From the NCBI GenBank assembly GCA_009103225.1, contig RHPI01003079.1, positions 28,377-92,376 of the forward strand: DNA of 64,000 bases. The letters run 5' to 3'. The notes beneath the pieces were generated by a model that was given only the letters and a program-made list of their open reading frames with translations, did not search any database and had not been told where the DNA came from. Both the position numbers and the translations under genes were made by a program. The DNA comes from Chlorokybus atmophyticus (lineage: Eukaryota; Plantae; Mesostigma and Chlorokybus algae). Below, one piece after another: positions 26,781 through 56,399 of the stretch (its first letter is position 1; each line of letters opens with the position of its first letter).

Positions 26781-29766
26781 TGTGTTCTTGACTAATCATT
26801 CCACTAACGCCGCGGAGCTGGCCGCGGCCTCGTGCGCCGCAGATTGGGCGTGGCTGGTGCCGCCGGCAAAGATGTCTCAACTTTTACTGCAATTGCACTC
26901 ATATTTACATTGGTCCATAATAAAATTCGGTCCATGGTCCGCTGGCCGGACCAGTTATGATTGAAGTATTGTAATGATATGATTGAGTCCCTGGTCCGAT
27001 GGCCGGACCAAACCTGGTCCTGATGCAACAGTAATCGGCTGGACCTTCAGTGGTCCGTACCAAGGGACAATGGTACCATTCACGTGAAATTTGGACCATG
27101 AATGGTCTGACTGTCGATGAAAAACAGACCATGCAAGGTCCACCGATTCAATCATTTAGCAGGGGGAAATCCCGGTCCTGCGTCACGGACCATTCATGGT
27201 CCTTGAACGTCAATCCGTGTGAGAGCAAGCTTGGCATGGGAGCTGTGCTGGTACAGCACGATGAGAACAAGAAGGAGCGGGTAGTGCTGTGCGCCCATGC
27301 TCCAGCACCTGGTTGACTGTCAAACCTTGCGGTCTTTTATACTCTTGCTGCACCGTGCGAAGTACCTCGATAGGCGCAAGGTTTGTCCACTTCACACGCA
27401 GCCGATGCACGCGCGAACCATGCCGTGCCGCATCCATGACCAGCTCATGGCTTAAAACATGTCTCACCAGCTGATAGTCCTCTTTCACGCGCTTGCGCTT
27501 ATCGTCTTCAGCCGGCACATTCTCCATGATGTACGCCATGGGCTGCTCTTGTCTTTGCTGAATCATGTTGATAACACGTACCAACACTCAAAACAATGAT
27601 GAGCGCGCATCCATTAATCCCTTCCCATGACCAACCCGTGAATGCCCTTGACATTCCCACCCCGCTACTAGCAAATTAACCTTGCCAATTGCCGCGAGAT
27701 TATGTGGCCCCACCAAGCAAATGTCTTGCGGCCATGCACTTTGAAAGCCCCTCATTGCACTCTCACAGCAGGTCCGGGTACTTCGTCAACAACACCCTCA
27801 CATGATGTTGAGCACCTTGTTGTGCCGTTGGCGAAGGGTCCACATAGACATAACGCCGCACCTTGATGCCGGCGTTTAACGCAGCCGCAAGCTCACTTGC
27901 AATGCCACCGAGCAGCTCTACCATCACAACACCGTCCTCGGGGACCTTCCACTTAATGGTGTTGTAGTTGATAGGCGGATGTATAGCTCGCACACCCTCG
28001 GGCAGCAACGGAGGCGCCAATGCCATCACATCTCGTGTCCACGCATGGCCAACCTTCTCATGAGCTTGTTGATGCCGCTGAGCACGGTGTTATGCAGCTA
28101 TCTCCAGCTCCTGTTGCTGAGCATGAGCCGCTTGTAGCAGCTGCAGAGGTCTCTCCTCTTCCATATGGTTGAAGACAACGTCTCCCTTCTCCACATGGTC
28201 ATTGTACAAGTCGACGCTGTCACCAAGCCACCCCATAGCTGGTCGCCAACTCAAGCACGCCCACAGTGCAGATGCTGAGGTTGGAGTCCTCTCGACACCC
28301 CCTTGCGTGATGCTCAACGGAAAGTAGGCCTTCTCTCCCCCTCCCGGGCGCCAATGCGGCCGAAAGAACCCTTGCTCGATCCAATTACCAACGCCGCCAT
28401 CGACGGGGAATAAGAACTCTTGTCCGCGCAGCACATCATACCCTCTTGCATCCGTGATGAGGTATTGAACCTTGAATGATGTGGTAGCACCTCCCATTGC
28501 AGTCACACGGATCTCCACCGGCTGCACGGTGATGCCTCGCACCGTCTTGACGGTCCCCGCCGAGGTCTGAATCATGAACGGGCATCTCTCCCACTCGTTG
28601 GAGGTAAGTTCTAGGCCTGCCACAGCTCTGGAACCTAAGATGACAGGTTGTGCGCCTGTATCTACCAAGACAACATCTGGTACAAAGCCGTCCAGGCTGA
28701 CGTGACCACTCCGGTTGTCTACCATAGCCACATTGGGCGAAATCCTCTCTCTCAAGGCCGGCCGAGTGGCGGGAAGCTGTGCCAACATCCCTCCTACACT
28801 CCCCATACCTTCCAGTTTGTCTCCAAACTGAGCGAGAGAACTCGACTTCGATGGGGGCCCTCCCGACGCCGCCAGCATTGCCCGCGCAGCCATACGGCCT
28901 ACTTGCGCCATCATATCTCCTTGAGACTTGCTTATCTGGTCATGAGACTTTGTGGAGGCACTCTTCATGGTGTCTAGAGCGCTTTGCAACAGCCCTACCA
29001 CCTGCTCCTTGGTGACTCCAAGGTCCTCCAAGCGAAGAAGAGGCTGCCCGACCAGCACCGCCGCGACACCCTCCAACGGCGCCGTCAACTCCGAGTTTCC
29101 TTCGTGGACTTGGGTTGGGGGCTGTTGGTAAAGCATCTTAGACTTCTCTAAAAGCTTTACACAAACTTGGAGCAGCTCCTCCACTTTCTTGTGCTCACCA
29201 CTGCTACCAACGCCGACCTCAAGTCGCGCCGTTGCCGTAGCAGTCGGCTGCACCTTCGCACCTTCCGGACGCGAACTCTCTTGCTCCAACGGGGTTGTCG
29301 GCAGCAACTCAAATAACTTTGATATGCGGGCAGGTGGTGCACGCATCCTATCATGATCCACCCCCTCCTCGCGGACGAGTGCGGCCTCCTCCTCGACCAT
29401 CCTAGTCGGAGAGCTGGTGCAGCCCCGCCGCGCGCCGACGCTCTCGTTATAGCCGCAGCTGGCACCTCCGTGCCTCCGTGGAGCGCACCAAACGCAAGGT
29501 GGCTTCCGGAGCTGCTAGGCACATCCCTCCCTCCGCTCTCGGGCCACTTCCCTCGCTCGAGCATGCTCTTCAATGATGCATACTCAGATTGCATAGCCGC
29601 TAGGGCTCTTGTCACCTCTAACATTGAAGGTCCTTCCTTCACACTCGAGTGAGCACCGGCTGCACCTCCTCGTGCTTGTAGACGCAGCTCTGGGTGCTTA
29701 CTCCAACACTTGGCCTCGACGCGCCCTCCCTTCTTGCAATGAGAACACACGTCCTTGTTACCACCC

Positions 29767-30438
29767 TGTCATGCCATCTACCCTCGCATGCCAGTCCTTC
29801 TCGAGCATGCCTACACCCAGCCCCACGCCCGGGCTACCAGCATGAAGACCGCGCGAGCCCCAGCCTACTGCTAGCTACTGTACCGCTCATGTAGCATGTA
29901 GCTAGGGCTACTTTATAGACCTGTCTGTAGGGACCGCGCGTAGCTGATCAGTTGTAAGTCTGTTAATAACACATGTGCTATATCGAGTCTTAGGAGATTT
30001 CCGAAATAGCATGAGGCCTCGATGTGACCGTTGGCCTAGTGCCCGCGTGGCACTGCACAGTTATGATTTGACATGTATAAGTAGGAAGTCACGTCACCAG
30101 ACTGGCTGGTGACACTGTAAGTGAGTACTGGGAGTACTGGGAGTACTGGGAGTACTAAGAAGTAAAGACTCTGTTTCTAAAGAGCTTGTGAAGCGACTTG
30201 AACTGGAAGCACGCTGCCCCGGTTGCCAAGAATTCCCTTACTGCGTGAGACACGGTGCATGCTCTTGTGCGCTGTGCCTGTCATTGTTGTGAGCTTGGCG
30301 GTGGTGTGTTGTCTCAATAGTCAGGGTGTTGTATCCACGTGTTGCACACTCATTCACCTCACTTAACAGTGTATCATTCTATCCACTCATGCAAAGAACT
30401 GTGTCCACAGCACTACCTATCGTAGTGGCTTGTTGACT
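29767..30438 (+). repeat. Terminal repeat A1 of element D (672 bp)
   Basis: Matches 40017-40679 (and copies near 44.4 and 49.6 kb) apart from scattered substitutions and the number of 9-bp GAGTACTGG units. Confidence 0.95.
30076..30122 (+). promoter_or_regulatory. TATA box and predicted transcript 5' end / self-primer of element D
   Basis: TATAAG at 30076; GGTGACACTGTAAGT starts 32 nt later (30108-30122) and is the perfect complement of 30436-30450. Confidence 0.7.
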
Positions 30439-30450
30439 TACAGTGTCACC
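30436..30450 (+). promoter_or_regulatory. Self-priming primer-binding site (Tf1-like) of element D
   Basis: ACTTACAGTGTCACC at the end of A1; no TGG-starting tRNA PBS nearby; preceded by a small stem-loop CACTAC-ctatc-GTAGTG. Confidence 0.75.
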
Positions 30451-30639
30451 CTCTTTGCACAAGTGAGTGTGTTGCAATCTGCATCAGATAGTGCAGTCTG
30501 CACCCAGGGATAGATCGCTGGGCATTCGTTATCATTGTCATCACATAGTGCGCACAAGCACTAGTGTGTTGGGTGGTAACAGCATCAGGATGAACGGTAG
30601 AGCACAAGCACTCTACCCTTTCACCTCTGGACCAGCTGT

Positions 30640-33600
30640 ATGAGCAAGCCCACCCCGTTCTCCCCAATAGACGAGCGTGACCTCAGCAGTTGGAGCCCAA
30701 CCACCAACCTCACCTACGAGCGGACTAGTGACGGGAGCATCGACCGCAGCAGCAGAGGCTCGCGCTCCATCTCCAGCTTCACCCCGCTCCACTCTACTCC
30801 TCGTCATCAAGCTTCTCCACTATCATCGGACAGCGATGACAACGAGATGGAGTCTTCGAGTTCAACCACATCCCTGCGCTTCTCCGGACGTGCCGGCACC
30901 ACCTCGCTGGATGAGTTCATCATCAAGTTCCACTCCAAGATGCGGCAGCAAGCTCTGAAGAACAAAGACTGGTCAGATGAGATCTCTTTCCACATTGCTG
31001 CTCAGTATCTTGATCATGAAGCACACGATGTCTGGAAGTCCGTTGCTGAACTGCATCGAGTAGACGGCTATGGCGAGCTTGCCAGCACCATAGCATCTGC
31101 ATCTCTGCACCGTCCAGCAGGTGTCGTTCCACCTGCCACTTCAGTTGCAGTAACAGGCTTGTCCATAGCTGCAGCTCTCAAGCAGGCAGAGGAAGAACCA
31201 GAGTTGGTACTTGTCAACTTGACCCCTGCAGAAGTGGAGTCCAAGGAGGCCACATGTCGAGTCCGCATCCTTGACCGTTCTGCCATCATCCTTAAGGAAC
31301 AAAGAGCTGTATAGCAAGCGGCAGCCGCAGAGTGGGGTACTCCTCTACCTCCAGCAACACCTGGCTCTCGTGCAGGAGGCAGTGCTTTCACCCTCGGGTC
31401 AGTAGCACTGCGCGCACCAGCCATCACCGTAAGTGCTGCCATCTCTGATTCTCCACTCAAGGACCTGTACGCTGCCCTGCGCCGCACCTTCCCTCCTCAG
31501 ACCATCAGCAAGGTTGAGGAGCTGAGACGCTTCCGATGCAAGCCCAATGAGGATCCCCTCCGCTTGTACTCCAGACTGGAAGGTCTGCTGAAGGACACTG
31601 ACTACAAGATTATCAGTGAGGAGGCTGCTGCAGTGATATACGTCAATGAGTTGGATGCTGCTCTGAGCGAGTCGACACGCCTGACTCTGAACTACAGCAG
31701 GCCCCTTGGCTACACCCTCAAAGAAGCCTTCGAGACTGCACAAGCCATCCACAAGCGCTTGGTGTATGAGAAGGCAGTGCTGGACACCAACCGCAGCGCC
31801 GCACAGCCTGTAGTCAGCACGACAACTGAGCCTCCTCGCCGCGACCGTGGCCGAGACGCCCCACCAGCACGCGACAAAGGGAAACGGTCAGCTCATGCGG
31901 CACTTGCTGCCCCTGTGCTGTGTCATCGCTGTGGACGGCATGGGCACTACCAAAAGGAGTGCATCGAAGAATACTCAACTTTGGTTTGCGACCATTATCA
32001 CAAGACTGGTCATTTGGAGTCAGTCTGCTGGCTCAAGTTCCCAGAGTTGAGGCCCGCCAACAGCTACAACCACAACTACTCCGGTGGCTACAACAGCAAC
32101 AACACTGGAGGCCACACTGGCAACAACTTCAATGGCTACAATAGCAACAACACTGGAGGCCACACTGGCAACCACTTCAATGGCTACATTAGCAACAACA
32201 CTGGAGCCCACAACAGCAACAACGCTGGTGGCAATAACAACAACAACAACGCCAGTGTTCGCAAGGAAGAGCAAGGCTACAGGGGGAAGAACAGACCTCC
32301 TCAGCGTAAGGGACCAGAGACACGTCCGCGCGCTGCTGCTGTTGCCGCCAAGGCTTCAGCCAACCCACCAGCTGATGACCATATGGCAGCCCTCATGGCG
32401 CGTATGGCACGCTTGGAGGAAGACAAGGAGCAGGACTACCGCGCCTGCTACGCTGCCCGATGGGCGCTGATGGCTGCAAAACGCGAGAGAGACAGGAACA
32501 CTCCGTCCCGCGTGCAACCATCACGACGAGCACGAGGGGAAGCTGCAACAACATCAGCAGGCACCTCCTCCGAAGCCACCAGTGGTGCTGCCTCCGCAGC
32601 AACAGCCACACCGGCTACAACGTCGACTCCACCAACGTCAGCAGCACCCACTCCAGTTGCACCACAACCTGGTACACCGATGGACACCGGGACGCCGACG
32701 CTGGTGAGCACAATGGCAACAGCCGCTATGTCTACCAAATCTGCACCATTGGGCGGTGCACTTCCCACTGCAGCAGTGCCTCTGTCCGTAGGCGTTGAGA
32801 CAACTCTCGCACCACCGACCGGTACCGTCGCAACTGCCACAATGGCCATCGTTGAGCCCGCTGTCTCTGCAGCGACGTGCGCAGCCACTGCCCGCTCTCG
32901 ACGTCACTCACGCTGTCCCAACTGGTCAGCAAGCTGAGCGAGCATGGGAGACCATCCTGCGCGGAGCAGACCCCACTACCATCGCCTTCGGTCGCGGGGG
33001 GAGCGCACCACGCGTGTCGCCCGCGATGATCGCATCTTCCCGCTACCAGAGGTTCACACCCTTCCAGCACTCACTCAACACCAATTGGAAGATGAGATCC
33101 TTGCTGGCACTGCACCTCCGATGCGTGACAGGGTGTTTTTGATCAGCTACAGCCCACCGGTAGTGTTGGAGTTGGCCCTGCAGCTGTTCTGGGCGTTGCA
33201 CAACAACATGCAGACCGCCCCGCACCAGCCTGCACGCATGCCAACCACCACCTTTGAACCCAGCCCGCTGGACACGTATCGGGACCGCCGAGACACCGTC
33301 CAGCAGCGCATCGCCGACGCAGCCGACCTGCCTTTGAGCACTGATGAAGCACTCGGACCTCCTACAACCGCTCGCCTTCATCAGCGCTACCACGCACTGG
33401 AACAGGCATATTATTGGCGACAGGATCAAGCTGCCGCCATTGCTGCACGTGAACAAGCTCTTGAAGCTACGCGTGCACCAGTACCGCAGTCACCAGCTGC
33501 TGGTCCATCCTCCAGCACCATTCCGCTCTTCGTCGAGACCAACTCTGACCAAGCGAGGGCGTTGGCTCAACAAACCAGGGGGGTGATCGCCCCGTTGCTG

Positions 33601-36600
33601 CCTGCGCTGGTGGAGGATCTACCTGAGGACCAAAGGGAGCCAGGGAGGGGCTACCTTACACCACAAGGGTGTACATAAAGAGATGAAGCAGGACTGGTTG
33701 GAGAGCAACAACTACGCACTGCTCTGTTGCGACAAGCAACCATGCTGCATCGACAAGAAGGCATTGGACTTCGGCAGATGCTTGGGATGCAAGACAATGG
33801 CAACGCGGCACGCGCACGGTTAGTGACGTGGCTGGTCACCAACCATCCCGCAGTCCCGTTGTTCGCTTTCGGCGCCAGAATAGCGTGGGTGGACGCATTC
33901 CTTCGCTCCATACGGCAAGCCTATGATGAAGTGGCTTCCGCCGCCACTGACACTCTGGAGGGAGCTCTGGAGGCTATACTGAGTTTGCCAGGAGTGGAGG
34001 CAGGACGTCAGTGCAGGCGCATCGCCGCTGCTTACGAGCAGCATGTCCAACAGGCAGAGACCCGCCTCACTGTACGCGCACGAGCAATAACAGTGCTGGA
34101 AGTGGGAGTGGTCAACGGCAGATGGGATGCTTACATGGCAGGGATCCTCAGGGTGCCCACCATCACTCACGACATGAGGGCGCGGCTCCTACGCGCAGTG
34201 TACCTGCAACCCATGCCTCAGAACCATCGCTATATAGACGTGAACAACAATGCGACGGCTACATGGGAAGGTACACTAGTCAGAGAGGCAGCCCATGCTG
34301 TGCGATGGACCTATGCGGAGGAGCAGGCTGCACGAGAGGCAGTCCCGCAAACACCAGGTCCTCCAGGGTTCCCGCCACAGCCACTGGCCACTCCTCCTGG
34401 CATGACAACAGCTGCACAGAGGGTCAACCCTCCTGCACCTCCACTTGGACAGGTTGCAGCAGCACCTCCAGTGCCTAGGCCACCACGCGTGTACCAGCAA
34501 CCGCGACAAGGACGGTTTGGACAAAGCCGAGGACAAGGAGGTCCACAAGATCCATCAGGCAGAGGAGCCCTGGCTGCCTTACGGTCAGGCCCCGCGGATG
34601 AGAGTGAAGCAACAGTCTCTCCACGCAAGAGGTTCCGTCGCTTCAAGAGGCTTCGCATCAACGCCAATGCAGCCATGATCGCCAACCAAGGCAAGCACGT
34701 GACCGTCAATGGTCGGGCACCCAAACGCGTGATGCTAAACACTGGAGCACAGCCTGTCATCATTGGGCGCTACCTCGCACGAGATCTCGGCATCACCAGC
34801 GCTGAGCTGCTTCCCTGTCCCTACCAGCTGGACACCGCAACCGGCAACCGCGACAAGGTGCTCGACCTTACCAAGCAGGCTGTGAGCATCCGCCTCACAG
34901 GACTAAACCCTTCCCACAGCACCAAGATTGTACAAAGGTGTGTGGTCACCGATGCCGGGTCCTTTGACCTACTGCTGGGACAGGACTGCAACTTCCCTGT
35001 CGGCATGGGGATGGACTGCTGGACTGAGCAGGCATGGTTTCGACCGCATTGGGATGAGGATGATGGAGAGGAGCAGGGATTCCTACCTCTCGAACTGGTG
35101 GCCAAGGCCCGCTCGCAACGAAGGTCGGCCGCAGCAGCCACCTACAGTCCTACAAAAAGCTCACGTGTGCCTCGTGCCCGAACGCAGCCGAGGACAACTG
35201 CAACGAGCTCGAGCCCGAGCTCAAACGCTGAAGAGGACTCTCCTACACCGTACGATGAGTCTCAGGAGACTGTCACTAAAGAAGTGGCCTTTCAGGAGCC
35301 ATCCGAGCGTCGCTGGAGCGCACAAGTAGCAGCACACATGCTACTGACCAGGCCTCAGCTCACTGCACACTTCCCTGTCTACAAAGACCAGGCTACAATG
35401 CAGAAGCAGTACTACATAGCTACGGAAGTTGTGGAGTTCCACATGTTCCGCCGACAACAAGGCATCACCGTGCTGGAGCTGTTCGGAGGCATAGACAGTG
35501 GGCTTGCGGCTGTCCTCAACACAGGAACAACAGTCACCAAGTACCTCTACTGTGACCCTAACCCTCATGCACAGGAGGCTCTGAGCCATCATTTACGACA
35601 GCTGCACCAGCGCTACCCGCAGCAGCTACCGCTGTCGGCACTGCAAGGGAGCCAGAAGGCTCTATCGCAGGACATCCGCTGGATTACCAAGGATCACCTG
35701 CAGGCAGTCGGCAACATTGATTTGCTGATAGCAGGATGGGAGTGTCAAGGGCACTCCAGGGCAGGCAGAGGCCACGGGCTCTCTGATCCTCGCTCACAGC
35801 TGTTCTGGGAGCTAATGAGAGTCATCAAACTCCTGCAGACCAGTCAGATCGCTAGGCCCTTGGGGTACATAATCGAGAATGTGCACTCCGAGGATGACAA
35901 GCGGCATCACGTCGCCAAGGCCTATCGACAAGTATGCTCCTTGCTGGGGCATCCTCTCAAAATCAACGCCGCGCGTCATGGATCTCGCGCACACCGCGTC
36001 CGCGCCAAGTGGACCAACCTGGCCATTGTGGAGGACCTGTTTCTGGCAGAGTACCTATACAGCAATCGGCCACGAAATCTCGTCGTCGATGACATCCTGG
36101 ACCCTGAACGCACAGCGCAACCGGTCACACGCCTTGACCACCACCACTTCTACCAGTGCAACCAGCCTGGTCAGCCGCGCCGCGCACTACCCACACTTGT
36201 ATCCTATCTAGGCTCCTGCGCGTTCCGCAATGGAGGCGACGGCATGGTGTTAGACTCCAACACTGGACAGCTGGAAGAACCCAATGCTCGTGAGCGCGAG
36301 CGTGCTATGGGATTCTCTCAAGGCAGCATCACAGGCTCCACGCTGACAATCAGTCAACAGTGTCAGTTGTTAGGGCGCGCCATGGATCAAAACAGCATGG
36401 TGTGGTACTTGGAAATGTGCTTTGCTCTCCAGGACCGCCATGTGTCCTTCCAGAAGCTCGAACACCTGGCTGGGGGGTGGATTGCTCGCTTTTCAGAGAT
36501 CAAAGCGGCACACACCGCCCTCGAGACCGCCCACATGGAGGAGCAAGCAGCAGTCACTGTGGAAGACATTCCAGTGGTCGCCAACGCTACCTCGTGGTCC

Positions 36601-39600
36601 CACGTCATTGGACCGCTGGCCACAGGCCAGACTCGAGAGCAACTCGAGGCTCTCTTCAACAAGTGGAGGAGCCAATTCAGCTTCAGTGTGAAGGAGCTGG
36701 GCATCTGCTCAGCATACCAAATGGACATTGAACTAGTGGACACCGAACCGGTGTTCAAAAGACAGTACCGCCTCTCCAAGCTAGAAGAAGATTTGGTGGA
36801 ACAGAGGTGCAAGGCGCTGCTAGATGCAGGCCTGATCGAGGAGTCCACATCGGATTTTGCGGCCGCGACCGTCATGCCCCTGAAAAAAGATTCAGCAGGC
36901 AACTGGACAGATCGGCGCATGTGTGGCGACTATCGCCCCCTCAACAACAAGACCAAGCAGGACAGGTATCCAATGCCTACCGCAGAAGGCATCTTTGACG
37001 ATGTAGGAGACTGCACGGTCTTTAGTATCCTGGATATGCGCCAAGGGTACAACCAGATCGCCATCAAGGAGGAGGACAAGCACAAGACTTCCTTCTGGGG
37101 AAACCGGCAGCTGTACCAGTGGAAGGTCATGCCCTTCGGACTGAAGAACGCTCCGGCCAAGTTCCAGCGCGTCATGGACAAAGCCCTCAAGGGGTTGGAC
37201 TTCGCACGCTGCTACATCGACGACATCCTCATCTTCAGTCACAGCAATGAGGAGCATCTCCAGCACATCGAAGAGGTGCTACAGAGGCTGAAGGAAGTCG
37301 GGATGACGGTGCACCCTGACAAGTGCACCTTCTTCACCCACAAGGTACCCTACCTAGGACACATGATTGTGCCCCATGGTGTGTACGTACAGCAGGCCAA
37401 AGTGGAGGCACTGGTGGCTATCCCTGCCCCCACAGACCTCACGCGGCTGCGGGCCTTCCTCGGCCTTGCCAACTATTACCGCCGGTTTGTCAAGGACTTT
37501 GCCAAGATCGCAAGGCCTCTCAACGAACTACTGAAGAAGGACACCGAGTTCTTGTGGAAGGAGGCACAACAGGAGGCCTTTCAGGAGCTGAAGCTCCGCC
37601 TCACCACAGCTCCCATTCTGCAACGCCCTGACTACACCAGGTCGTTCATCCTGCACACAGACTGGAGCAAGCTCGGCATGGGGGCCGTGCTCGTACAGCA
37701 CGACAACAACAAGAAGGAGCGCGTAGTGTCGTACGCCAGCCGCAGCAACAACAGTGCTGAGGCCAACTACAGCAGCTACGAAGGGGAGTGTCTCGCCGCA
37801 GTGTGGGCCATCTCCTTCTTCCGACCCTTCCTGTTTGGACGGCAGTTCCAACTGGTCACTGACCATCAACCCCTCAAGTGGCTAATGAACAACCAGCACT
37901 TGACAGGAAAGTTAGCACGATGGGCGCTGCTGCTCCAGGAGTACGACTTCGAGGTGGAACACCGCGCAGGCCTTGCCAACCAGGATGCGGATGGCCTCAG
38001 CCGTAACCCCCACCTCAGCACCAACGACGCCACAGGCGCCCGACATGAGTTGGGTCCTACAGCTGCACCTTCAGGTGTGGCCACCATGTTCGCTGTCGCT
38101 GCGCTACGCTCAGGACGCAGGACTCAGATCGCTGAGGCAGCAGCAGACGGGGACATGCCCGCTCTCGAGCCCGCCATCACCACCACCGATCCTTTATCAG
38201 AAGAAGCAATCGCTGCCGACCCTGAGGTGGATGATGAGGAGCTGGCACCCACCGACACACGACAAGACATCTGGCTGGACGAGCCATCCCTCGCACTGCT
38301 TCAGACTGGACAACTTCCAGCAGGCATGAGCGCACGCGAGAAGGACCGCGTCCGGCAACGCACTCAGCGTTACCGCTGGGCCAACGACAGGCTGTATCGA
38401 CGGATACAAGATGCAGATCAGGAGGTCCCCACACCAGCTGCACGTGAAGGCATCATCTCCTCCCTTCACACCGAGCTCGGGCACTTCGGTGTCAAGCGCA
38501 CGGTCAGCCTGGTCAGGACCCAGTACTGGTGGTATGGGGTGCACAGACAGGTGCGGGAGTTCGTCAGCAACTGTCAGCAGTGTGACATGGTTCGCGCCAG
38601 CCTCAACACGCGCAATGCCACCTTGCATCCCCTTCCCATTTCCGGGTTGTTCTACCGCTGGGGACTGGACATCCTCGGAGACCTAGCGCCCTCAGCGCGA
38701 GGCAACCGCTACATCCTCGTCATGATCGAGCACTTCTCCAAGTGGGTGGAGCTGGTGCCCCTGCCCGACAAGAGCAGTGAGGGAGTAGCCCAGGCTTTCC
38801 TCTCCCATGTACTCGGACGCTTCGGCAGCTGCGCTGAAGTCATCACCGACCAGGGTACGGAGTTCAGAGGAGCCTTCGACAAGCTTATCGACAGATGCTT
38901 CATCGACCACCGTCGCACCTCACGCGACCACCCGCAGGCCGACGGCCTCGCCGAGCGTACCGTGCAGACCATCAAGAAGGCACTGCGCAAGTACGTCCTC
39001 GCCTACGAGAAGAATACCTGGGATGATCACCTCCCATGGGTAGCAATGGGCTACCGGCTGTCCAAGCAGGCAGCCCTGCGAGAGTACAGCCCATACTATC
39101 TACTGTTCGGAAGGCAGCCATTGCTCCCTTTCCGCGCACAGCAGGAGGTCGACAGAGTGGTGGACAATCTCGACAACCCCGACGAGATGGTGTATGATCT
39201 GACAGTGCGCAGTGCGCTGTTCGAACACACAGTCCCCATGGCCTTCAACAACCTGCGCATCGCGCAGCACCGCGACACGCTGCGTTACGAGCGTGTGCGC
39301 AGTGGTTTCTACAAGGAGCGGGAGCGCCGCTTCGAGTCAGGAGACTTCGTCTACCGTATGGCGTCTACACGCGACACCCTCGATACCTCCGTCGGGCGTG
39401 CTGTCTACAAGGTATTGAAGGTGCACCCCACAGGGGTACTGGACCTGTTGGGACAACGAGGCGAGCGCATGAAGGACAACATGGTCAACTGTGCGCCCTG
39501 TCATCTCCCCTACATTGCTGGCTTCACCAAGATCCAGCACCCGCGTCCGCTGCGCAGCACCCGATGCGAGAAGTGTGGCAGCGCCGACGACGACCCATTG

Positions 39601-39729
39601 ATGATGTTATGCGACGGCTGTAATCAAGGCATGCACTGCTACTGCCTTGACCCTCCACTGGACGCAGTACCCTTGTGGGAGTACTGGTGCGATGACTGCC
39701 GCATCAACGGTCCCCCACACAGTCGGTAG
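30640..39729 (+). CDS. Single-frame Gag-PR-DNMT-RT-RNaseH-IN-PHD polyprotein (~3029 codons) with three in-frame stops
   Basis: ORFs 30640, 31564, 32944 and 33727 share one frame; stops TAG 31312, TGA 32935, TAA 33676. Gag CHRCGRHGHYQKEC; protease MLNTGAQ (Asp to Asn, 34738); DNMT 35464-36420; RT YIDD 37213; RNase H HTDWS; integrase HTELGH..CQQC, LDILG, TDQGTEF, LAERTV; PHD 39565-39699. Confidence 0.95.
32086..32240 (+). repeat. 48-bp coding tandem repeat (GYNSNNTGGHTGNNFN) in Gag
   Basis: Units start at 32086, 32134, 32182. Confidence 0.9.
35464..36420 (+). CDS. C5-cytosine DNA methyltransferase domain, DNMT3-like, within Pol
   Basis: Motif I VLELFGGIDSG; II YLYCDPN; IV DLLIAGWECQG; VI YIIENV; VIII SRAHRVRAKWTNL (DNMT3: SAAHRARYFWGNL); IX ERERAMGF; X QLLGRAMD. 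Confidence 0.92.
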
Positions 39730-39767
39730 GAACTGAGTTCTGGAGCAGAGGGCTACCCCAGAATCTC

Positions 39768-39774
39768 AGGGGGG
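39768..39774 (+). promoter_or_regulatory. Polypurine (G-run) tract immediately upstream of repeat B1
   Basis: AGGGGGG running into GTGGCTTGTTGACT; G-run length differs in the duplicated copies. No purine tract precedes A2. Confidence 0.55.
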
Positions 39775-40905
39775 GTGGCTTGTTGACTGTGTGCACTACG
39801 ACACAGTCTGTACACAAAGGTGGCGAGCAACATCGGCTCGTCCACTGCACTAAACACCGCGTAGGCTCATCTTCAAGCCTATGCCCACGATTGGGGGGTT
39901 GTCTTTTGCTTGCATGGCTCTAATGCAGTGCACGGCACTAGCATGCGTGCAGCACTAGCACTCCTCTGCAGCCTGTCCGAGACAAGGTTGCCCTCGACCA
40001 TGACAGGCACGACAGCTGTCATGCCATCTACCCTCGCATGCCAGTTCTTCTCAAGCATGCCTACACCCAGCCCCACGCCCGGGCTACCAGCATGAAGACC
40101 GCGCGAGCCCCAGCCTACTGCTAGCTACTGTATCACTCATGTAGCATGTAGCTAGGGCTACTTTATAGACCTGTCTGTAGGGACCGCGCGTAGCTGATCA
40201 GTTGCAAGTCTGTTAAGAACACATGTGCTATATCAAGTCTTAGGAGATTTCCGAAATAGCATGAGGCCTCGATGTGACCGTTGGCCTAGTGCCCGCGTGG
40301 CACTGCACAGTCATGATTTGACATGTATAAGTAGGAAGTCACGTCACCAGACTGGCTGGTGACACTGTAAGTGAGTACTGTGAGTACTAGGAGTACTAAG
40401 AAGTAAAGACTCTGTTTCTAAAGAGCTTGTGAAGCGACTTGAACTGGAAGCACGCTGCCCCGGTTGCCAAGAATTCCCTTACTGCGTGAGACACGGTGCA
40501 TGCTCTTGTGCGCTGTGCCTGCCATTGCTGTGAGCTTGACGGTGGTGTGTTGTTTCAGTAGTCAGGGTGTTGTATCCACGTGTTGCACACTCATTCACCT
40601 CACTTAACAGTGTATCATTCTATCCACTCATGCAAAGAACTGTGTCCACAGCACTACCTATCGTAGTGGCTTGTTGACTGTGTGCACTACGACACAGTCT
40701 GTACACAAAGGTGGCGAGCGGCATCGGCTCGTCCACTGCACTGAACCCCGCGTAGGCTCATCTTCAAGCCTATGCCCACGATTGGGGGGTTGTCTTTTGC
40801 TTATATGACTCCAATGCAATGCACGGCACTAGCATGCGTGCAGCACTAGCACTCCTCCGCAGCCTGTCCGAGACAAGGTTGCCCTCGACCATGGCAGGCA
40901 CGACA
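39775..40905 (+). repeat. 3' terminal block of element D: B1 (39775-40014) - GC - A2 (40017-40679) - B2 (40666-40905)
   Basis: B1 and B2 are both 240 bp; A and B overlap by GTGGCTTGTTGACT (14 bp); B1/A2 junction GGCACGACA-GC-TGTCATGCC is a near-perfect palindrome. Confidence 0.95.
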
Positions 40906-41478
40906 ACCCTTCCCACAACTCTTTGCAATGTGACCTTGCTCGCCGCACGACCAGCATTTGGCACCCGACACACCTTCCACACTCGCGTTGTTGGCGTGCT
41001 TGAGCTGCCCGGACTTGCCACCAGCTGCCTTGCTCGCTGCTACGGGCTTGGAAGAGCTCTTCTCCTCCGACGCTTCAATTTCAACCCACGACGCTGCCGG
41101 TCGATGTTCTTGAGTTACTCATGCTGAATCTCGGCCGTCTCGGCCACCTTGAACACATCCGCAAGCGTGTACGTACCAAACTCTGACTGAGTGGTCAACA
41201 TGGTCTCCACCTTCAGCCTCAAGTCCCCCTCAAGTTGTTGAAGGTACACCACCGCCGCGGTCTGATCCGTCATCACCTTGTAGTCCGTGTCTGTCAAGAG
41301 CTTGAGCATACGCGTGTACATCATCCTAGCCGTCTCACCGGTGTGGCGCGTGAAATAGCTCAGCTCGCAAACCTTGGCAGGGTTGATTGTGGGTAAGTCT
41401 TCCTCAGAAGCGCCTTAAATTCAGTCACCCGCGGCTCCTTCTTCCACTCCGCCTTTAACTCAGCCGGTGCACCCACGN

Positions 41479-44400
41479 TAAGGAGGAGGACAAGCACAAG
41501 ACTTCCTTCTGGGGAAACCGGCAGCTGTACAAGTGGAAGGTCATGCCCTTCGGACTGAAGAACGCTCCGGCCAAGTTCCAGCGCGTCATGGACAAAGCCC
41601 TCAAGGGGTTGGACTTTGCACGCTGCTACATCGACGACATCCTCATCTTCAGTCACAGCAATGAGGAGCATCTCCAGCACATCGAAGAGGTGCTACAGAG
41701 GCTGAAGGAAGTCGGGATGACGGTGCACCCTGACAAGTGCACCTTCTTCACCCACAAGGTACCCTACCTAGGACACATGATTGTGCCCCATGGTGTGTAC
41801 GTACAGCAGGCCAAAGTGGAGGCACTGGTGGCTATCCCTGCCCCCACAGACCTCACGCGGCTGCGGGCCTTCCTCGGCCTTGCCAACTATTACCGCCGGT
41901 TTGTCAAGGACTTTGCCAAGATCGCAAGGCCTCTCAACGAACTACTGAAGAAGGACACCGAGTTCTTGTGGAAGGAGGCACAACAGGAGGCCTTTCAGGA
42001 GCTGAAGCTCCGCCTCACCACAGCTCCCATTCTGCAACGCCCTGACTACACCAGGTCGTTCATCCTGCACACAGACTGGAGCAAGCTCGGCATGGGGGCC
42101 GTGCTCGTACAGCACGACAACAACAAGAAGGAGCGCGTAGTGTCGTACGCCAGCCGCAGCAACAACAGTGCTGAGGCCAACTACAGCAGCTACGAAGGGG
42201 AGTGTCTCGCCGCAGTGTGGGCCATCTCCTTCTTCCGACCCTTCCTGTTTGGACGGCAGTTCCAACTGGTCACTGACCATCAACCCCTCAAGTGGCTAAT
42301 GAACAACCAGCACTTGACAGGAAAGTTAGCACGATGGGCGCTGCTGCTCCAGGAGTACGACTTCGAGGTGGAACACCGCGCAGGCCTTGCCAACCAGGAT
42401 GCGGATGGCCTCAGCCGTAACCCCCACCTCAGCACCAACGACGCCACAGGCGCCCGACATGAGTTGGGTCCTACAGCTGCACCTTCAGGTGTGGCCACCA
42501 TGTTCGCTGTCGCTGCGCTACGCTCAGGACGCAGGACTCAGATCGCTGAGGCAGCAGCAGACGGGGACATGCCCGCTCTCGAGCCCGCCATCACCACCAC
42601 CGATCCTTTATCAGAAGAAGCAATCGCTGCCGACCCTGAGGTGGATGATGAGGAGCTGGCACCCACCGACACACGACAAGACATCTGGCTGGACGAGCCA
42701 TCCCTCGCACTGCTTCAGACTGGACAACTTCCAGCAGGCATGAGCGCACGCGAGAAGGACCGCGTCCGGCAACGCACTCAGCGTTACCGCTGGGCCAACG
42801 ACAGGCTGTATCGACGGATACAAGATGCAGATCAGGAGGTCCCCACACCAGCTGCACGTGAAGGCATCATCTCCTCCCTTCACACCGAGCTCGGGCACTT
42901 CGGTGTCAAGCGCACGGTCAGCCTGGTCAGGACCCAGTACTGGTGGTATGGGGTGCACAGACAGGTGCGGGAGTTCGTCAGCAACTGTCAGCAGTGTGAC
43001 ATGGTTCGCGCCAGCCTCAACACGCGCAATGCCACCTTGCATCCCCTTCCCATTTCCGGGTTGTTCTACCGCTGGGGACTGGACATCCTCGGAGACCTAG
43101 CGCCCTCAGCGCGAGGCAACCGCTACATCCTCGTCATGATCGAGCACTTCTCCAAGTGGGTGGAGCTGGTGCCCCTGCCCGACAAGAGCAGTGAGGGAGT
43201 AGCCCAGGCTTTCCTCTCCCATGTACTCGGACGCTTCGGCAGCTGCGCTGAAGTCATCACCGACCAGGGTACGGAGTTCAGAGGAGCCTTCGACAAGCTT
43301 ATCGACAGATGCTTCATCGACCACCGTCGCACCTCACGCGACCACCCGCAGGCCGACGGCCTCGCCGAGCGTACCGTGCAGACCATCAAGAAGGCACTGC
43401 GCAAGTACGTCCTCGCCTACGAGAAGAATACCTGGGATGATCACCTCCCATGGGTAGCAATGGGCTACCGGCTGTCCAAGCAGGCAGCCCTGCGAGAGTA
43501 CAGCCCATACTATCTACTGTTCGGAAGGCAGCCATTGCTCCCTTTCCGCGCACAGCAGGAGGTCGACAGAGTGGTGGACAATCTCGACAACCCCGACGAG
43601 ATGTTGTATGATCTGACAGTGCGCAGTGCGCTGTTCGAACACACAGTCCCCATGGCCTTCAACAACCTGCGCATCGCGCAGCACCGCGACACGCTGCGTT
43701 ACGAGCGTGTGCGCAGTGGTTTCTACAAGGAGCGGGAGCGCCGCTTCGAGACAGGAGACTTCGTCTACCGTATGGCGTCTACACGCGACACCCTCGATAC
43801 CTCCGTCGGGCGTGCTGTCTACAAGGTATTGAAGGTGCACCCCACAGGGGTACTGGACCTGTTGGGACAACGAGGCGAGCGCATGAAGGACAACATGGTC
43901 AACTGTGCGCCCTGTCATCTCCCCTACATTGCTGGCTTCACCAAGATCCAGCACCCGCGTCCGCTGCGCAGCACCCGATGCGAGAAGTGTGGCAGCGCCG
44001 ACGACGACCCATTGATGATGTTATGCGACGGCTGTAATCAAGGCATGCACTGCTACTGCCTTGACCCTCCACTGGACGCAGTACCCTTGTGGGAGTACTG
44101 GTGCGATGACTGCCGCATCAACGGTCCCCCACACAGTCGGTAGGAACTGAGTTCCGGAGCAGAGGGCTACCCCAGAATCTTAGGGGTGGCTTGTTGACTG
44201 TGTGCACTACGACACAGTCTGTACACAAAGGTGGCGAGCGGCATCGGCTCGTCCACTGCACTAAACACCGCGTAGGCTCATCTTCAAGCCTATGCCCACG
44301 ATTGGGGGGTTGTCTTTTGCTTGCATGACTCCAATGCAGTGCACGGCACTAGCATGCGTGCAGCACTAGCACTCCTCCGCAGCCTGTCCGAGACAAGGTT

Positions 44401-47400
44401 GCCCTCGACCATGGCAGGCACGACAGCTGTCATGCCATCTACCCTCGCATGCCAGTCCTTCTCGAGCATGCCTACACCCAGCCCCACGCCCGGGCTACCA
44501 GCATGAAGACCGCGCGAGCCCCAGCCTACTGCTAGCTACTGTACCGCTCATGTAGCATGTAGCTAGGGCTACTTTATAGACCTGTCTGTAGGGACCGCGC
44601 GTAGCTGATCAGTTGTAAGTCTGTTGATAACACATGTGCTATATCGAGTCTTAGGAGATTTCCGAAATAGCATGAGGCCTCGATGTGACCGTTGGCCTAG
44701 TGCCCGCGTGGCACTGCACAGTTATGATTTGACATGTATAAGTAGGAAGTCACGTCACCAGACTGGCTGGTGACACTATAAGTGAGTACTGGGAGTACTG
44801 GGAGTACTAAGAAGTAAAGACTCTGTTTCTAAAGAGCTTGTGAAGCGACTTGAACTGGAAGCACGCTGCCCCGGTTGCCAAGAATTCCCTTACTGCGTGA
44901 GACACGGTGCATGCTCTTGTGCGCTGTGCCTGTCATTGTTGTGAGCTTGGCGGTGGTGTGTTGTCTCAATAGTCAGGGTGTTGTATCCACGTGTTGCACA
45001 CTCATTCACCTCACTTAACAGTGTATCATTCTATCCACTCATGCAAAGAACTGTGTCCACTGCACTACCTATCGTAGTGGCTTGTTGACTGTGTGCACTA
45101 CGACACAGTCTGTACACAAAGGTGGCGAGCGGCATCGGCTCGTCCACTGCACTGAACCCCGCGTAGGCTCATCTTCAAGCCTATGCCCACGATTGGGGGG
45201 TTGTCTTTTGCTTATATGACTCCAATGCAATGCACGGCACTAGCATGCGTGCAGCACTAGCACTCCTCCGCAGCCTGTCCGAGACAAGGTTGCCCTCGAC
45301 CATGGCAGGCACGACAACCCTTCCCACAACTCTTTGCAATGTGACCTTGCTCGCCGCACGACCAGCATTTGGCACCCGACACACCTTCCACACTCGCGTT
45401 GTTGGCGTGCTTGAGCTGCCCGGACTTGCCACCAGCTGCCTTGCTCGCTGCTACGGGCTTGGAAGAGCTCTTCTCCTCCGACGCTTCAATTTCAACCCAC
45501 GACGCTGCCGGTCGATGTTCTTGAGTTACTCATGCTGAATCTCGGCCGTCTCGGCCACCTTGAACACATCCGCAAGCGTGTACGTACCAAACTCTGACTG
45601 AGTGGTCAACATGGTCTCCACCTTCAGCCTCAAGTCCCCCTCAAGTTGTTGAAGGTACACCACCGCCGCGGTCTGATCCGTCATCACCTTGTAGTCCGTG
45701 TCTGTCAAGAGCTTGAGCATACGCGTGTACATCATCCTAGCCGTCTCACCGGTGTGGCGCGTGAAATAGCTCAGCTCGCAAACCTTGGCAGGGTTGATTG
45801 TGGGTAAGTCTTCCTCAGAAGCGCCTTAAATTCAGTCACCCGCGGCTCCTTCTTCCACTCCGCCTTTAACTCAGCCGGTGCACCCACGTGCAACGCCCTC
45901 TCTCGCATCTCCAGCTGCTCTTTAAACTCTCTCAACGTGCTCGAGGTTTCATCCTTAAGGTATAGAGGCAGCATCTTGAAGGCCTTGTGCTCGTCCCACC
46001 CCGACTTGTCGCGGTACTCCCATTTTACCATCTCGGAGTCGAAGCGGTCGATGAAGTCGCGTAGGTCCGCCGTGCCGGGCCTCCCACTGAACTTCGGTGT
46101 GCTATCCATGGCTGAAGCTGAGTCAAACATCACCCCACCCTCGTCTTCGAAGTCGGACTCCTCGTCACTCGAAGACTCCACCTCTTTAGCGACGCCCTCC
46201 ACCACCGGAGTGATCGCCCTTCTCGGCGCTCTTCTCTGTAAAGCCGCCTACGTGGGTCTTTCGTGCCAGTCCTCACCAGACCGTAGGGGCATGAACATGC
46301 CTGCTCCTCACTTCAACTCGAGCAAACTCAGCTGATGGGTTGAATGCAAGTGAAAGATGCGTGTCTCCTTGCAAAAGGAAGGCAAGATGACCCCAACTTG
46401 ACTTGCAATCAGCCGTTTGCTCATGAAGCTCAGTCCGCACCCATGCTAAGGCAGCTCATACGGTGCATCAAGATCGCTACAATAATTCACACTCCTTCAT
46501 GCAAGGCAACCAAGCAAGGCACACGCGCGCACACACGCAAGCATGCACACACGCATACACTCAGCCAAGAACCTCTTCCCGAAGGCTTTGCTTGCACTCC
46601 AGTGAGCCAACTTGCATTCAACCAACTGTAACACAAGCTAGCTAAGGCTTATATACCACCGTTGAGTCCATGCCCAACCAACTCCTAACCAACTCTTCAA
46701 CTTCCAATGACTTACAGGCTGCACCAGCTACATAACAGTCATTATGAGGCCAATAAATGGTAGTAAATGGATAGCAATGGCTCCCCAAAGCTTATCCTCT
46801 TCAAGTACACTCCAAGACGCATCTTTTGAGTCCATCCCCACGCCAAACCACCACTCCAACCGTCAGTTACATCTGTTGCAAGTCATGACTCCAAAACAGC
46901 TGCGCGGGATACCATACTAACTCGATTACGCCGAGAACTCTGTATCTGGCTATGGATACGCCTCAAATACGCCTCCCACTCGTAAAGCACGACCCAAACT
47001 CGAGTCCCAAGTGAAAACCTAACATGAAGAGCCTCTATAATGGCTCAGGGCTCCAAAGTTATAGGGCCCCATGTATGCTGCCAGCCCCAAGGGCACCATG
47101 CACATGACACTATATGCTCGCGCATGACAACAGTCCAATGCATCTCAGACATGCAAGGTGGCAGCCGTTGAGCTGAGGAGAATGGCTTGGTCACTTGACA
47201 CGCTGTATCCTGCTATGCAAAAGGCAGTAGTGCGCCTCATGAGCTTGCATGGGAGTTCGTGCAGCCCGAAGCGTGCCAACTTATTTTGGAGGTGGTTGTT
47301 TCGTGAGAGCAGGTCAAGCCGGGCATTTCACCGTGCGGAGAAGATGATTACAATCTGGAGCTTTTATGCCATCAGACAGCGTGAAGGCCTTGTGGACTAT

Positions 47401-47635
47401 GCAGCACAAGACTCAGACTTATCGTGCATGCCGCTACCCGAGGATCGCGATGTTCCCCACGCCATGTATGATTCTGAAGTTGTGAACTTGATTGAGTAGC
47501 GTTATAGCAGCATGTCTACGAGCTGCTATAGCAATAGCCTTGATACATGTGCAACTTGTGCATGGTGACCAACGCATTGCGCAGGGCACACGCAATGGGG
47601 GTCGATTGGTGCAGTGGCATGTATTTATGTCATGC
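41479..47635 (+). repeat. Second copy of D pol 3' half + B-gc-A-B + host flank (likely redundant contig)
   Basis: Bounded by single N at 41478 and 47636; ORF 41543-44143 nearly identical to 37129-39729; same ACCC junction at 45317. Confidence 0.85.
46338..46655 (-). promoter_or_regulatory. TATA, self-primer and PBS of element B
   Basis: Minus strand: TATATAA at 46655, GGTTGAATGCAAGT 32 nt later (46623-46610), perfect complement ACTTGCATTCAACC at the end of the A repeat (46351-46338). Confidence 0.75.
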
Positions 47636-47636
47636 N

Positions 47637-50600: not shown

Positions 50601-52850
50601 CCTTCCACACTCGCGTTGTTGGCGTGCTTGAGCTGCCCGGACTTGCCACCAGCTGCCTTGCTCGCTGCTACGGGCTTGGAAGAGCTCTTCTCCTCCGACG
50701 CTTCAATTTCAACCCACGACGCTGCCGGTCGATGTTCTTGAGTTACTCATGCTGAATCTCGGCCGTCTCGGCCACCTTGAACACATCCGCAAGCGTGTAC
50801 GTACCAAACTCTGACTGAGTGGTCAACATGGTCTCCACCTTCAGCCTCAAGTCCCCCTCAAGTTGTTGAAGGTACACCACCGCCGCGGTCTGATCCGTCA
50901 TCACCTTGTAGTCCGTGTCTGTCAAGAGCTTGAGCATACGCGTGTACATCATCCTAGCCGTCTCACCGGTGTGGCGCGTGAAATAGCTCAGCTCGCAAAC
51001 CTTGGCAGGGTTGATTGTGGGTAAGTCTTCCTCAGAAGCGCCTTAAATTCAGTCACCCGCGGCTCCTTCTTCCACTCCGCCTTTAACTCAGCCGGTGCAC
51101 CCACGTGCAACGCCCTCTCTCGCATCTCCAGCTGCTCTTTAAACTCTCTCAACGTGCTCGAGGTTTCATCCTTAAGGTATAGAGGCAGCATCTTGAAGGC
51201 CTTGTGCTCGTCCCACCCCGACTTGTCGCGGTACTCCCATTTTACCATCTCGGAGTCGAAGCGGTCGATGAAGTCGCGTAGGTCCGCCGTGCCGGGCCTC
51301 CCACTGAACTTCGGTGTGCTATCCATGGCTGAAGCTGAGTCAAACATCACCCCACCCTCGTCTTCGAAGTCGGACTCCTCGTCACTCGAAGACTCCACCT
51401 CTTTAGCGACGCCCTCCACCACCGGAGTGATCGCCCTTCTCGGCGCTCTTCTCTGTAAAGCCGCCTACGTGGGTCTTTCGTGCCAGTCCTCACCAGACCG
51501 TAGGGGCATGAACATGCCTGCTCCTCACTTCAACTCGAGCAAACTCAGCTGATGGGTTGAATGCAAGTGAAAGATGCGTGTCTCCTTGCAAAAGGAAGGC
51601 AAGATGACCCCAACTTGACTTGCAATCAGCCGTTTGCTCATGAAGCTCAGTCCGCACCCATGCTAAGGCAGCTCATACGGTGCATCAAGATCGCTACAAT
51701 AATTCACACTCCTTCATGCAAGGCAACCAAGCAAGGCACACGCGCGCACACACGCAAGCATGCACACACGCATACACTCAGCCAAGAACCTCTTCCCGAA
51801 GGCTTTGCTTGCACTCCAGTGAGCCAACTTGCATTCAACCAACTGTAACACAAGCTAGCTAAGGCTTATATACCACCGTTGAGTCCATGCCCAACCAACT
51901 CCTAACCAACTCTTCAACTTCCAATGACTTACAGGCTGCACCAGCTACATAACAGTCATTATGAGGCCAATAAATGGTAGTAAATGGATAGCAATGGCTC
52001 CCCAAAGCTTATCCTCTTCAAGTACACTCCAAGACGCATCTTTTGAGTCCATCCCCACGCCAAACCACCACTCCAACCGTCAGTTACATCTGTTGCAAGT
52101 CATGACTCCAAAACAGCTGCGCGGGATACCATACTAACTCGATTACGCCGAGAACTCTGTATCTGGCTATGGATACGCCTCAAATACGCCTCCCACTCGT
52201 AAAGCACGACCCAAACTCGAGTCCCAAGTGAAAACCTAACATGAAGAGCCTCTATAATGGCTCAGGGCTCCAAAGTTATAGGGCCCCATGTATGCTGCCA
52301 GCCCCAAGGGCACCATGCACATGACACTATATGCTCGCGCATGACAACAGTCCAATGCATCTCAGACATGCAAGGTGGCAGCCGTTGAGCTGAGGAGAAT
52401 GGCTTGGTCACTTGACACGCTGTATCCTGCTATGCAAAAGGCAGTAGTGCGCCTCATGAGCTTGCATGGGAGTTCGTGCAGCCCGAAGCGTGCCAACTTA
52501 TTTTGGAGGTGGTTGTTTCGTGAGAGCAGGTCAAGCCGGGCATTTCACCGTGCGGAGAAGATGATTACAATCTGGAGCTTTTATGCCATCAGACAGCGTG
52601 AAGGCCTTGTGGACTATGCAGCACAAGACTCAGACTTATCGTGCATGCCGCTACCCGAGGATCGCGATGTTCCCCACGCCATGTATGATTCTGAAGTTGT
52701 GAACTTGATTGAGTAGCGTTATAGCAGCATGTCTACGAGCTGCTATAGCAATAGCCTTGATACATGTGCAACTTGTGCATGGTGACCAACGCATTGCGCA
52801 GGGCACACGCAATGGGGGTCGATTGGTGCAGTGGCATGTATTTATGTCAT
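47637..52850 (+). repeat. Third copy of D integrase-PHD + B-gc-A-B + host flank
   Basis: Starts after N at 47636; 50534-52850 repeats 45317-47635 at a 5217-bp offset. Confidence 0.85.
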
Positions 52851-56335: not shown

Positions 56336-56399
56336 GTGCTTAGCAAAGGGGGCAAGGTTCCGGTGTAAATACCGTGTCCTGATGAGAGGGTTGTTGACT

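Follow-up and report, generated by a model that had tools for sequence, protein, structure and literature searches.

Permuted terminal repeats and an internal palindrome of integration ends in a Ty3/gypsy element of Chlorokybus atmophyticus

How does a retrotransposon with the proteins of the Ty3/gypsy group come to carry split direct repeats, the hallmark of PAT and Ngaro elements? The question is raised by positions 29767-40905 of a 64,000-nucleotide stretch of the alga Chlorokybus atmophyticus (assembly GCA_009103225.1, contig RHPI01003079.1, positions 28,377 to 92,376, forward strand), hereafter the window, to which coordinates refer unless another locus is named. Self-comparison and direct reading revealed in this interval a single 11.1-kb insertion, built from two repeats, A and B, in the order A1, internal region, G-run, B1, GC, A2, B2.

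Anatomy and coding capacity of the inserted element

The boundaries and repeats of the insertion are the following.

29763-29766, plus strand: left copy of the target-site duplication (TSD), ACCC; a host open reading frame (ORF) is regained on removal of 29767-40909
29767-30438, plus strand: A1 repeat, starting with TGTCATGCC; 96.6% identical to A2
39769-39775, plus strand: run of 7 G, end of the polypurine tract (PPT) and putative plus-strand primer site; runs into B1, not A2
39775-40014, plus strand: B1 repeat, ending with GGCACGACA; 95.4% identical to B2
40006-40025, no strand: internal palindrome GGCACGACA-GC-TGTCATGCC, with both integration ends abutted over a 2-bp spacer; putative attachment (att) site
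40017-40679, plus strand: A2 repeat; 96.6% identical to A1
40666-40905, plus strand: B2 repeat, ending with GGCACGACA; overlaps A2 by a 14-mer at 40666-40679
40906-40909, plus strand: right copy of the TSD, ACCC

The element thus starts with TGTCATGCC and ends with GGCACGACA, which are inverted repeats at 8/9 positions, and its ends read TGTC...GACA, i.e., TG...CA termini flanked by a 4-bp duplication. The 14-mer GTGGCTTGTTGACT forms both the end of A (30425-30438 and 40666-40679) and the start of B (39775-39788). Since the repeats span hundreds of bases, a chance origin of the layout is excluded. A preliminary description of this DNA, made from its letters, had given the same repeat order, the recurrence of both integration ends around an internal GC, the 4-bp TSD, the placement of the G-tract before B1 rather than A2, and the 14-bp overlap of A and B, all of which our analysis bears out. 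Ty3/gypsy elements have paired full long terminal repeats (LTRs); here, the 5′ end consists of A only, the PPT abuts B1, and a GC spacer precedes the terminal A2-B2, so that the paired-LTR rule is satisfied only by redefining the LTR as B-GC-A.

The insertion target is an older relative of the element that also combines Gypsy and DNA methyltransferase (DNMT) domains (37-50% amino acid identity). It was delimited by tblastn and ORF restoration.

27261-29766, minus strand: downstream part of the host element (3′ part of gag, and pol), truncated at ∼27261
40910-41477, minus strand: upstream part of the host element (5′ part of gag)

In silico removal of 29767-40909 regains the minus-strand gag ORF of this host with two CCHC knuckles, between which the insertion struck. 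Because the ORF is regained exactly between these knuckles, the whole A1...B2 block arrived in a single insertion, which duplicated 4 bp.

The internal region is a single reading frame from 30640 to 39727, which is broken by in-frame stops at 31312, 32935, and 33676. It comprises two coding parts.

30640-33678, plus strand: gag-like region of ∼3 kb, in the same frame as pol, with a CCHC knuckle (CHRCGRHGHYQKEC) at 31921
33727-39729, plus strand: uninterrupted Pol ORF of 2000 amino acids, identified by Pfam and by alignment with the prototype foamy virus (PFV) and Ty3 integrases

Pfam placed in Pol, in this order, an aspartic protease, a DNMT (C5 methylase), a reverse transcriptase (RT), an RNase H, an H2C2 zinc finger, a DDE integrase core, and a C-terminal PHD finger. 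Among solved structures, PFV integrase matches the integrase best and aligns with it at all three catalytic residues (D, D, and E); Ty3 Gag-Pol was matched as well. No Phage_integrase or other recombinase match was found by Pfam (E<=0.01) in any of the four ORF segments. The element encodes an intact DDE integrase, as the preliminary description had held in preference to a tyrosine recombinase. By every protein criterion, it is a Ty3/gypsy element, with protease, RT, RNase H, and integrase in this order, a CCHC-bearing gag upstream of pol, a short TSD, and TG...CA termini. It also has the DNMT between protease and RT, the PHD finger after the integrase, and the A...B-A-B repeats of the KnitGypsy-Dnmt3-like/PHD-finger Gypsy clade. 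Of the features of the DIRS order it shows the split direct repeats; it has no tyrosine recombinase, and its 4-bp TSD violates the rule that DIRS elements are TSD-free. Homologues of the RT-to-integrase region form a large green-lineage group with a PHD finger, many of them with a DNMT, and the window copy is a little-decayed member of this clade of Ty3/gypsy elements with a DDE integrase and a C-terminal PHD finger.

Reverse-transcription signals and conservation of the layout

Three further features of A1 and its 3′ border bear on where reverse transcription would start.

30076-30081, plus strand: TATA-like box (TATAAG), 32 nt before the putative transcript start
30108-30120, plus strand: presumed first 13 nt of the RNA and candidate self-primer, GGTGACACTGTAA; perfect reverse complement of 30438-30450
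30438-30450, plus strand: putative primer-binding site (PBS) of the Tf1 self-priming type, TTACAGTGTCACC, immediately following A1

A complementary pair of 13 nt such as 30108-30120/30438-30450 has a chance of ∼1e-5 within A. The preliminary description had placed a PBS after A1; a complementary site does lie there, although it is not of the tRNA type and pairs instead with the element's own 30108-30120. These signals are suggestive of a self-priming arrangement of the Tf1 type, with a transcript probably starting at 30108. A1 would then consist of the 3′ part of U3 followed by R and U5, and B1 would be the 5′ part of U3. As in Tf1/Sushi elements, there is no tRNA PBS, and the first 13 to 18 nt of the putative transcript are complementary to a site just after U5; Tf1 differs in having ordinary paired LTRs and a chromodomain, as opposed to the permuted repeats and PHD finger of the present clade. 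Just past the putative transcript start, a 9-bp tandem repeat (GAGTACTGG) has four copies in A1 (30121-30160) and three in A2 (40373-40403), and another read variant skips 40375-40421. A second U5 site, at 30355-30376 (CTCACTTAACAGTGT...), is complementary to nucleotides 5-18 of the presumed RNA and is preferred over the PBS in the predicted fold.

The layout was surveyed in individually fetched loci and in a JGI metagenome scan with an integrase alignment (80 loci). In the Chlamydomonas reinhardtii chromosome 9 copy (L006), A1 and A2 are 100% identical, the palindrome GCGTGACAGCTGTCACGC is perfect, and the TSD is TCCG; its junction reads ...GCGTGACA-GC-TGTCACGC..., followed by a 49-bp B2. Locus L008 displays a G-run, a B1 of 129 bp, the palindrome GTCATGACAGCTGTCATGAC, an A2 of 850 bp, and a B2 100% identical to B1, and the same motif is repeated in L001, L013, and L014. 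Within the metagenome scan, 38 loci have a CGACA-NN-TGTCA motif downstream of the integrase. A B2 ending in ...ACGACA was found in 17 loci at at least 13 different flanks, including L008, L013, L021, L027, L033, L043, L049, L064, L069, and L086; the L049 copy is full length, with the TSD ATCA. Matches to the palindrome upstream in L033, L050, L087, L080, and L060 were inspected and found to be spurious. The A2|B2 joint varies between related copies, and the palindrome is conserved. In other families, A2 meets B2 in a blunt joint or with a little sequence lost, and the 14-bp A/B overlap is therefore specific to Chlorokybus, not general to the mechanism. The preliminary description had proposed ordinary A+B 5′ LTRs in other copies as a test of its reading; the survey does not refute that reading, the layout being clade-wide in Chlamydomonas and metagenome loci.

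Some loci were less informative or more complex. L003, L004, and L005 (Klebsormidium and Closterium) are cut by contig ends or Ns and uninformative, and no flanking repeats were found in L009-L011 (one Pleodorina locus in three strains). On a hifiasm contig, L007 has an ACGACA-GC-TGTC junction, and its ends lie within a 432-bp repeat. In L002, several units form an array (A-B-GC-A-internal-B-GC-A-B-A) in which one junction is damaged; the array is compatible with extra LTR units. The last 120 bp of B1 in the Chlamydomonas copy (L006:17590-19757) contain three palindrome-like GTGACA-NN-TGTCA motifs, the first two each followed by an A-run. Two ENA entries hold element sequence only: L001 (ctg159469_5x_c) has 2.2 tandem units that each contain one B-GC-A and differ from one another by 0.17%, and L014 (scaffold_8219) has two tandem B-GC-A units with 400-bp overlapping ends. 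Both could be circles, tandem arrays, or products of assembly-graph collapse. The circular-looking L014, L082, and L039, and L001, flagged 'c', were considered as direct evidence for circles and rejected, since integrated copies would produce the same paths once collapsed in the assembly graph.

Both reverse-transcription boundaries recur among the families. Where A1/A2 homology ends, the self-complement is 13 nt long in the window, 18 nt in L006, and 16 nt in L014. In L001, with a single copy of A, the end of A is not placeable, and a 13- to 15-nt complementary pair lies in the same region; TATAAATA precedes the primer sequence there, an arrangement like that of the window, and the upstream partner lies ∼30 nt past the TATA box in both. 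The self-primer sequences vary among families while their complementarity persists, i.e., they covary. In every family examined, a G-run follows shortly after pol, and the homology between B1 and B2 sets in where this run ends, give or take a few bases, which is the expected end of a plus-strand primer; the G-run directly precedes B1 in L001, L002, L006, L008, L013, L014, L021, L025, L040, L043, L057, L064, L069, and L086. With B starting at the end of the G-run and A ending at the self-primer site, the LTR of reverse transcription is therefore best read as B-GC-A, as the preliminary description had suggested; in L001, whose contig is tandem or circular, an uninterrupted B-GC-A unit fills the interval from PPT to PBS. 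The A2|B2 joint matches the PBS and PPT boundaries and thus joins the end of U5 to the start of U3, and the integration ends correspond to the internal palindrome.

Two members of this clade are already in print. KnitGypsy-Dnmt3 of Klebsormidium nitens was given a DIRS-like repeat arrangement with Gypsy domains in a figure legend (de Mendoza et al. 2018, Fig. 4c; PMC5890265), and Gypsy-7a_cRei of C. reinhardtii was described as a PHD-finger Gypsy with 'LTR subparts', whose left LTR lacks the final 8 bp present in the right LTR (Craig et al. 2022, Fig. 6A legend; PMC9940879). The preliminary description knew of no published account; in this it was mistaken, the layout having appeared in these legends in 2018 and 2022, without a mechanism. 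Neither PMC5890265 nor PMC9940879 gives termini, PBS/PPT placement, or a mechanism for the layout, and literature searches found none elsewhere; a reference classification of plant elements, which is built on LTR pairs, does not list the clade (PMC6317226). KnitGypsy-Dnmt3 resembles the window element in having a Gypsy Pol whose protease and RT are separated by a DNMT3-like domain, and K. nitens proteins are among the homologues; it differs in host lineage, with ∼44% identity over the RT-to-integrase region. Gypsy-7a_cRei and L006 share with the window element a PHD finger in the polyprotein (directly after the integrase in L006) and asymmetric LTRs, and L006 further shares the order of G-run, B, ACA-GC-TGT palindrome, A, and B, the 4-bp TSD, and the self-primer. 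They differ in lacking the DNMT and the 14-nt A/B overlap and in having a 3′ B of 8 or 49 bp, compared with 240 bp in the window; in L006, moreover, B1 and B2 are unequal. To these accounts we add the clean nested insertion, the covariation of the self-primer, a cross-lineage survey of palindrome, G-run, and TSD, and the problem of a missing isomer set out below.

Origin of the permuted layout

The layout of the preliminary description is confirmed, and its interpretation is partly supported. The permuted repeats are best explained, with moderate confidence on our part, by a route in which the ends of the linear complementary DNA (cDNA) are joined and the integrase then cuts at the internal palindrome. 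The RNA would start inside A1, ∼30 nt past the TATA box, and end in the matching part of A2; its first 13 nt would fold back onto the site just past A1 and prime the minus strand, as in Tf1, and the plus strand would start at the G-run before B1. The resulting linear cDNA, (B-GC-A)-internal-(B-GC-A), would have ends that are not inverted repeats, the ends recognized by the integrase (TGTC...GACA) lying inside the LTR as the palindrome ...GACA-GC-TGTC.... The end of U5 would next be joined to the start of U3, in the window family via a 13- to 14-nt terminal redundancy, which could allow RT-driven or annealing-driven closure, and in other families bluntly or with slight loss. Integrase would cut after both CAs of the palindrome in the left LTR, where, owing to the 2-bp GC spacer, 5′ overhangs of 2 nt would result, just as on processed retroviral ends, and the opened molecule, inserted with a 4-bp staggered target cut, would give A-internal-B-GC-A-B with TG...CA ends and a 4-bp duplication. 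A variable A2|B2 joint next to a conserved palindrome fits the behavior of a circle junction. The preliminary description had the 14-bp redundancy close a 2-LTR circle; such a redundancy is present in the window family, whereas other families join bluntly or lossily.

There are precedents for the cutting step. The palindromic junction at which the two LTRs of a 2-LTR circle abut is a known cleavage substrate of the PFV and HIV-1 (human immunodeficiency virus type 1) integrases (Delelis et al. 2005 and 2007; PMC1180852, PMC1905944). As in the route proposed here, a DDE integrase cuts an internal palindrome of abutted att ends and yields processed ends. The retroviral palindrome, however, is the product of U5-U3 ligation, on a side path, whereas that of the window would be inherited inside U3 with a 2-bp spacer. 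The U5|U3 joint of the window is a site separate from the palindrome and ends up inside the integrated element, unlike the retroviral circle junction. Bacterial IS3/IS911 and IS30 elements are described as transposing through a circular form in which their ends abut, and a DDE enzyme works on these inverted ends, which lie a few base pairs apart; they are DNA transposons without reverse transcription, and their junction is made by the transposase itself. With att sites inside U3, integration would have to proceed from DNA whose U5 and U3 have been joined. We regard as evenly poised the broader proposal of an ancient DDE-integrase clade, in streptophyte and chlorophyte algae, whose att sites moved from the cDNA ends to an inherited palindrome inside U3, and which integrates from a U5-U3-joined form (a 2-LTR circle or its equivalent).

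Several observations weigh against the joining of cDNA ends followed by a cut at the palindrome. The joined-end intermediate, the circle, and the activity of the integrase are deduced from sequence logic, and the circular-looking contigs L014, L082, and L039 are explicable by assembly-graph collapse. A symmetric 2-LTR circle has two identical palindromes, so that random choice between them predicts an equal number of dead mirror isomers; the mirror isomer, A-B-GC-A-internal-B, was seen in none of four verified full-length copies, a small sample. In L006, B2 is only 49 bp, corresponding to the first 14 and last 30 nt of B1, in contrast to a G-run-defined B1 of 2.15 kb, while A1 and A2 are identical; in L013, B2 is 15 nt shorter than B1. 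Given these inequalities and the missing isomer, two rivals stay in contention, one templated and DIRS-like, the other cutting first and joining afterwards. In the minimum-free-energy structure predicted for RNA 30108-30460, the partner of the 5′ end is an internal U5 site instead of the PBS (z-score, −1.7). Finally, the three in-frame gag stops and the 3-4% divergence between the repeats mean that the window copy is not demonstrably active itself.

The better of the two rivals, which we consider unlikely, dispenses with the circle. Transcription would continue past the end of A2 into B2, and the RNA would hand the A2|B2 joint on to the next copy; a template switch onto A2 would supply the upstream portion that A1 lacks, and the linear DNA would be cut at the left palindrome and at the terminal CA of B2. 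Models of this sort were devised for the same layout in PAT and Ngaro elements. PAT, Ngaro, and TOC1-type elements share the A1-internal-B1-A2-B2 order, and in both cases the two ends would need restoring from a terminally incomplete RNA, but they have a tyrosine recombinase and lack both target duplication and TG...CA ends. A templated route gives a single deterministic product, which explains the lack of a mirror isomer; it permits a B2 unlike B1, as in L006 (49 bp versus 2.15 kb) and L013 (15 nt shorter), and matches the 8-bp B of Gypsy-7a_cRei (PMC9940879). With a PBS after A1 and a PPT before B1, however, ordinary strand transfers never copy the U5-B2 tail, and an extra priming step is needed. 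The A2|B2 joint, moreover, varies between related copies and lies exactly at the PPT/PBS boundaries, as end joining predicts and read-through does not require.

The cut-then-join route, which we consider improbable, keeps the palindrome cut and reverses the order of events: integrase would cleave the left-LTR palindrome on the linear cDNA and insert both ends, leaving the cDNA termini as a chromosomal break, to be sealed into A2|B2 by the end-joining machinery of the host or through annealing at the 14-nt redundancy. The product and the heterogeneity of the joint would be the same as in the circle model. B is always short (8-334 bp), which puts the palindrome near the DNA end and could explain a preference for the left one. 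Against this, a very short B (8 bp in Gypsy-7a_cRei and 49 bp in L006) would come loose once the palindrome had been cut, and every insertion would have to pass through a chromosome break.

There is very little chance that the layout is a one-locus rearrangement or an assembly artefact of an ordinary A+B LTR element. The assembly gives some ground for the suspicion, since the region downstream of the insertion's 5′ half is misassembled. Window positions 37066-52852 are a threefold redundant assembly; each of two single Ns, at 41478 and 47636, falls precisely where one 99% 'tandem' copy meets the next. Among the three versions, 55 positions vary, all in the repeated part and mostly through substitution (44, plus two short indel events), and B2 plus flank is invariant. 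The versions look like one locus assembled three times, from unmerged contig overlaps rather than real duplications, with the repeat part polished with reads of other copies; the A2 of the first assembled copy holds variants absent from high-depth unitigs. The 5′ half of the element lies outside the triplicated region, and B-GC-A-B is present in all three contig versions. Read-level support comes from Logan unitigs of two studies, which are short relative to the element and do not span it. They cover the passage from the PPT to B (96 nt; depth, 54) and, at depths of 60 and 92 in the two studies, B1-GC-A2 (39831-40045), with only 29 letters on the A side, 2 below the 31-letter bridging rule. 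Logan contig depth is 52 and 114 just past the A2|B2 joint and 45 and 74 at the 3′ end of pol, figures comparable to that of B-GC-A, and almost every genomic copy of the family therefore has the B-GC-A junction. The data fork at the end of A into PBS-type continuations (CACAGTGTCACCC...) in other copies, and depth continues over the A-to-B2 joint. In addition to this family-level backing of the junctions by unitigs of two studies, the cross-family survey refutes an artefact: Chlamydomonas and numerous metagenome loci, whose flanks differ, share the layout, and the PPT precedes B, not A, everywhere. That the element is, or was mobilized by, a tyrosine-recombinase (DIRS/PAT/Ngaro) element hardly deserves consideration: the split A1...B1-A2-B2 repeats are the hallmark of PAT and Ngaro elements, but no ORF has a recombinase domain, the DDE integrase is intact, and 4-bp TSDs and TG...CA ends are absent from recombinase elements.

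Should the joining of cDNA ends and a cut at the palindrome hold as a mechanism, retroviral-type integrases could use an internal palindrome on a joined-end intermediate as their normal substrate. This would bear on the long debate over 2-LTR circles as integration precursors and would mean that integration at a circle junction, a route first put forward for retroviruses and later given up, exists in nature in an obligatory form. The clade would also be a convergent DDE-element counterpart of tyrosine-recombinase split repeats, showing how both reached the same geometry. The model is directly testable because Gypsy-7a_cRei is jumping in laboratory Chlamydomonas strains, with 86 new insertions in one of them (PMC9940879). 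In annotation, tools based on LTR pairs will take A1/A2 as the LTRs of the clade and misplace its ends.

Other related sequences in the window

A 916-bp solo unit of the A-B type, from a related family, lies at 17408-18323, starting with TGTCGTGCC and ending with GCATGACA. It has a 4-bp TSD, TGTA (17404-17407/18324-18327), and interrupts another Gypsy-DNMT fragment (16537-18863) within the RT region; the final 779 bp of the solo unit are found again at 46351-47129 and 51568-52346. A more distant gypsy pol fragment (29-35% amino acid identity) occupies 53142-54803, near which, in the region 54079-58427, are two inverted repeat pairs (55768-56335 versus 58427-57862, at 92%, and 54079-54238 versus 56597-56441). 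On the minus strand, 62319-63992 corresponds to the gag region of another related element, with 72-75% nucleotide identity to 30748-32494 and its 5′ end past the end of the window.

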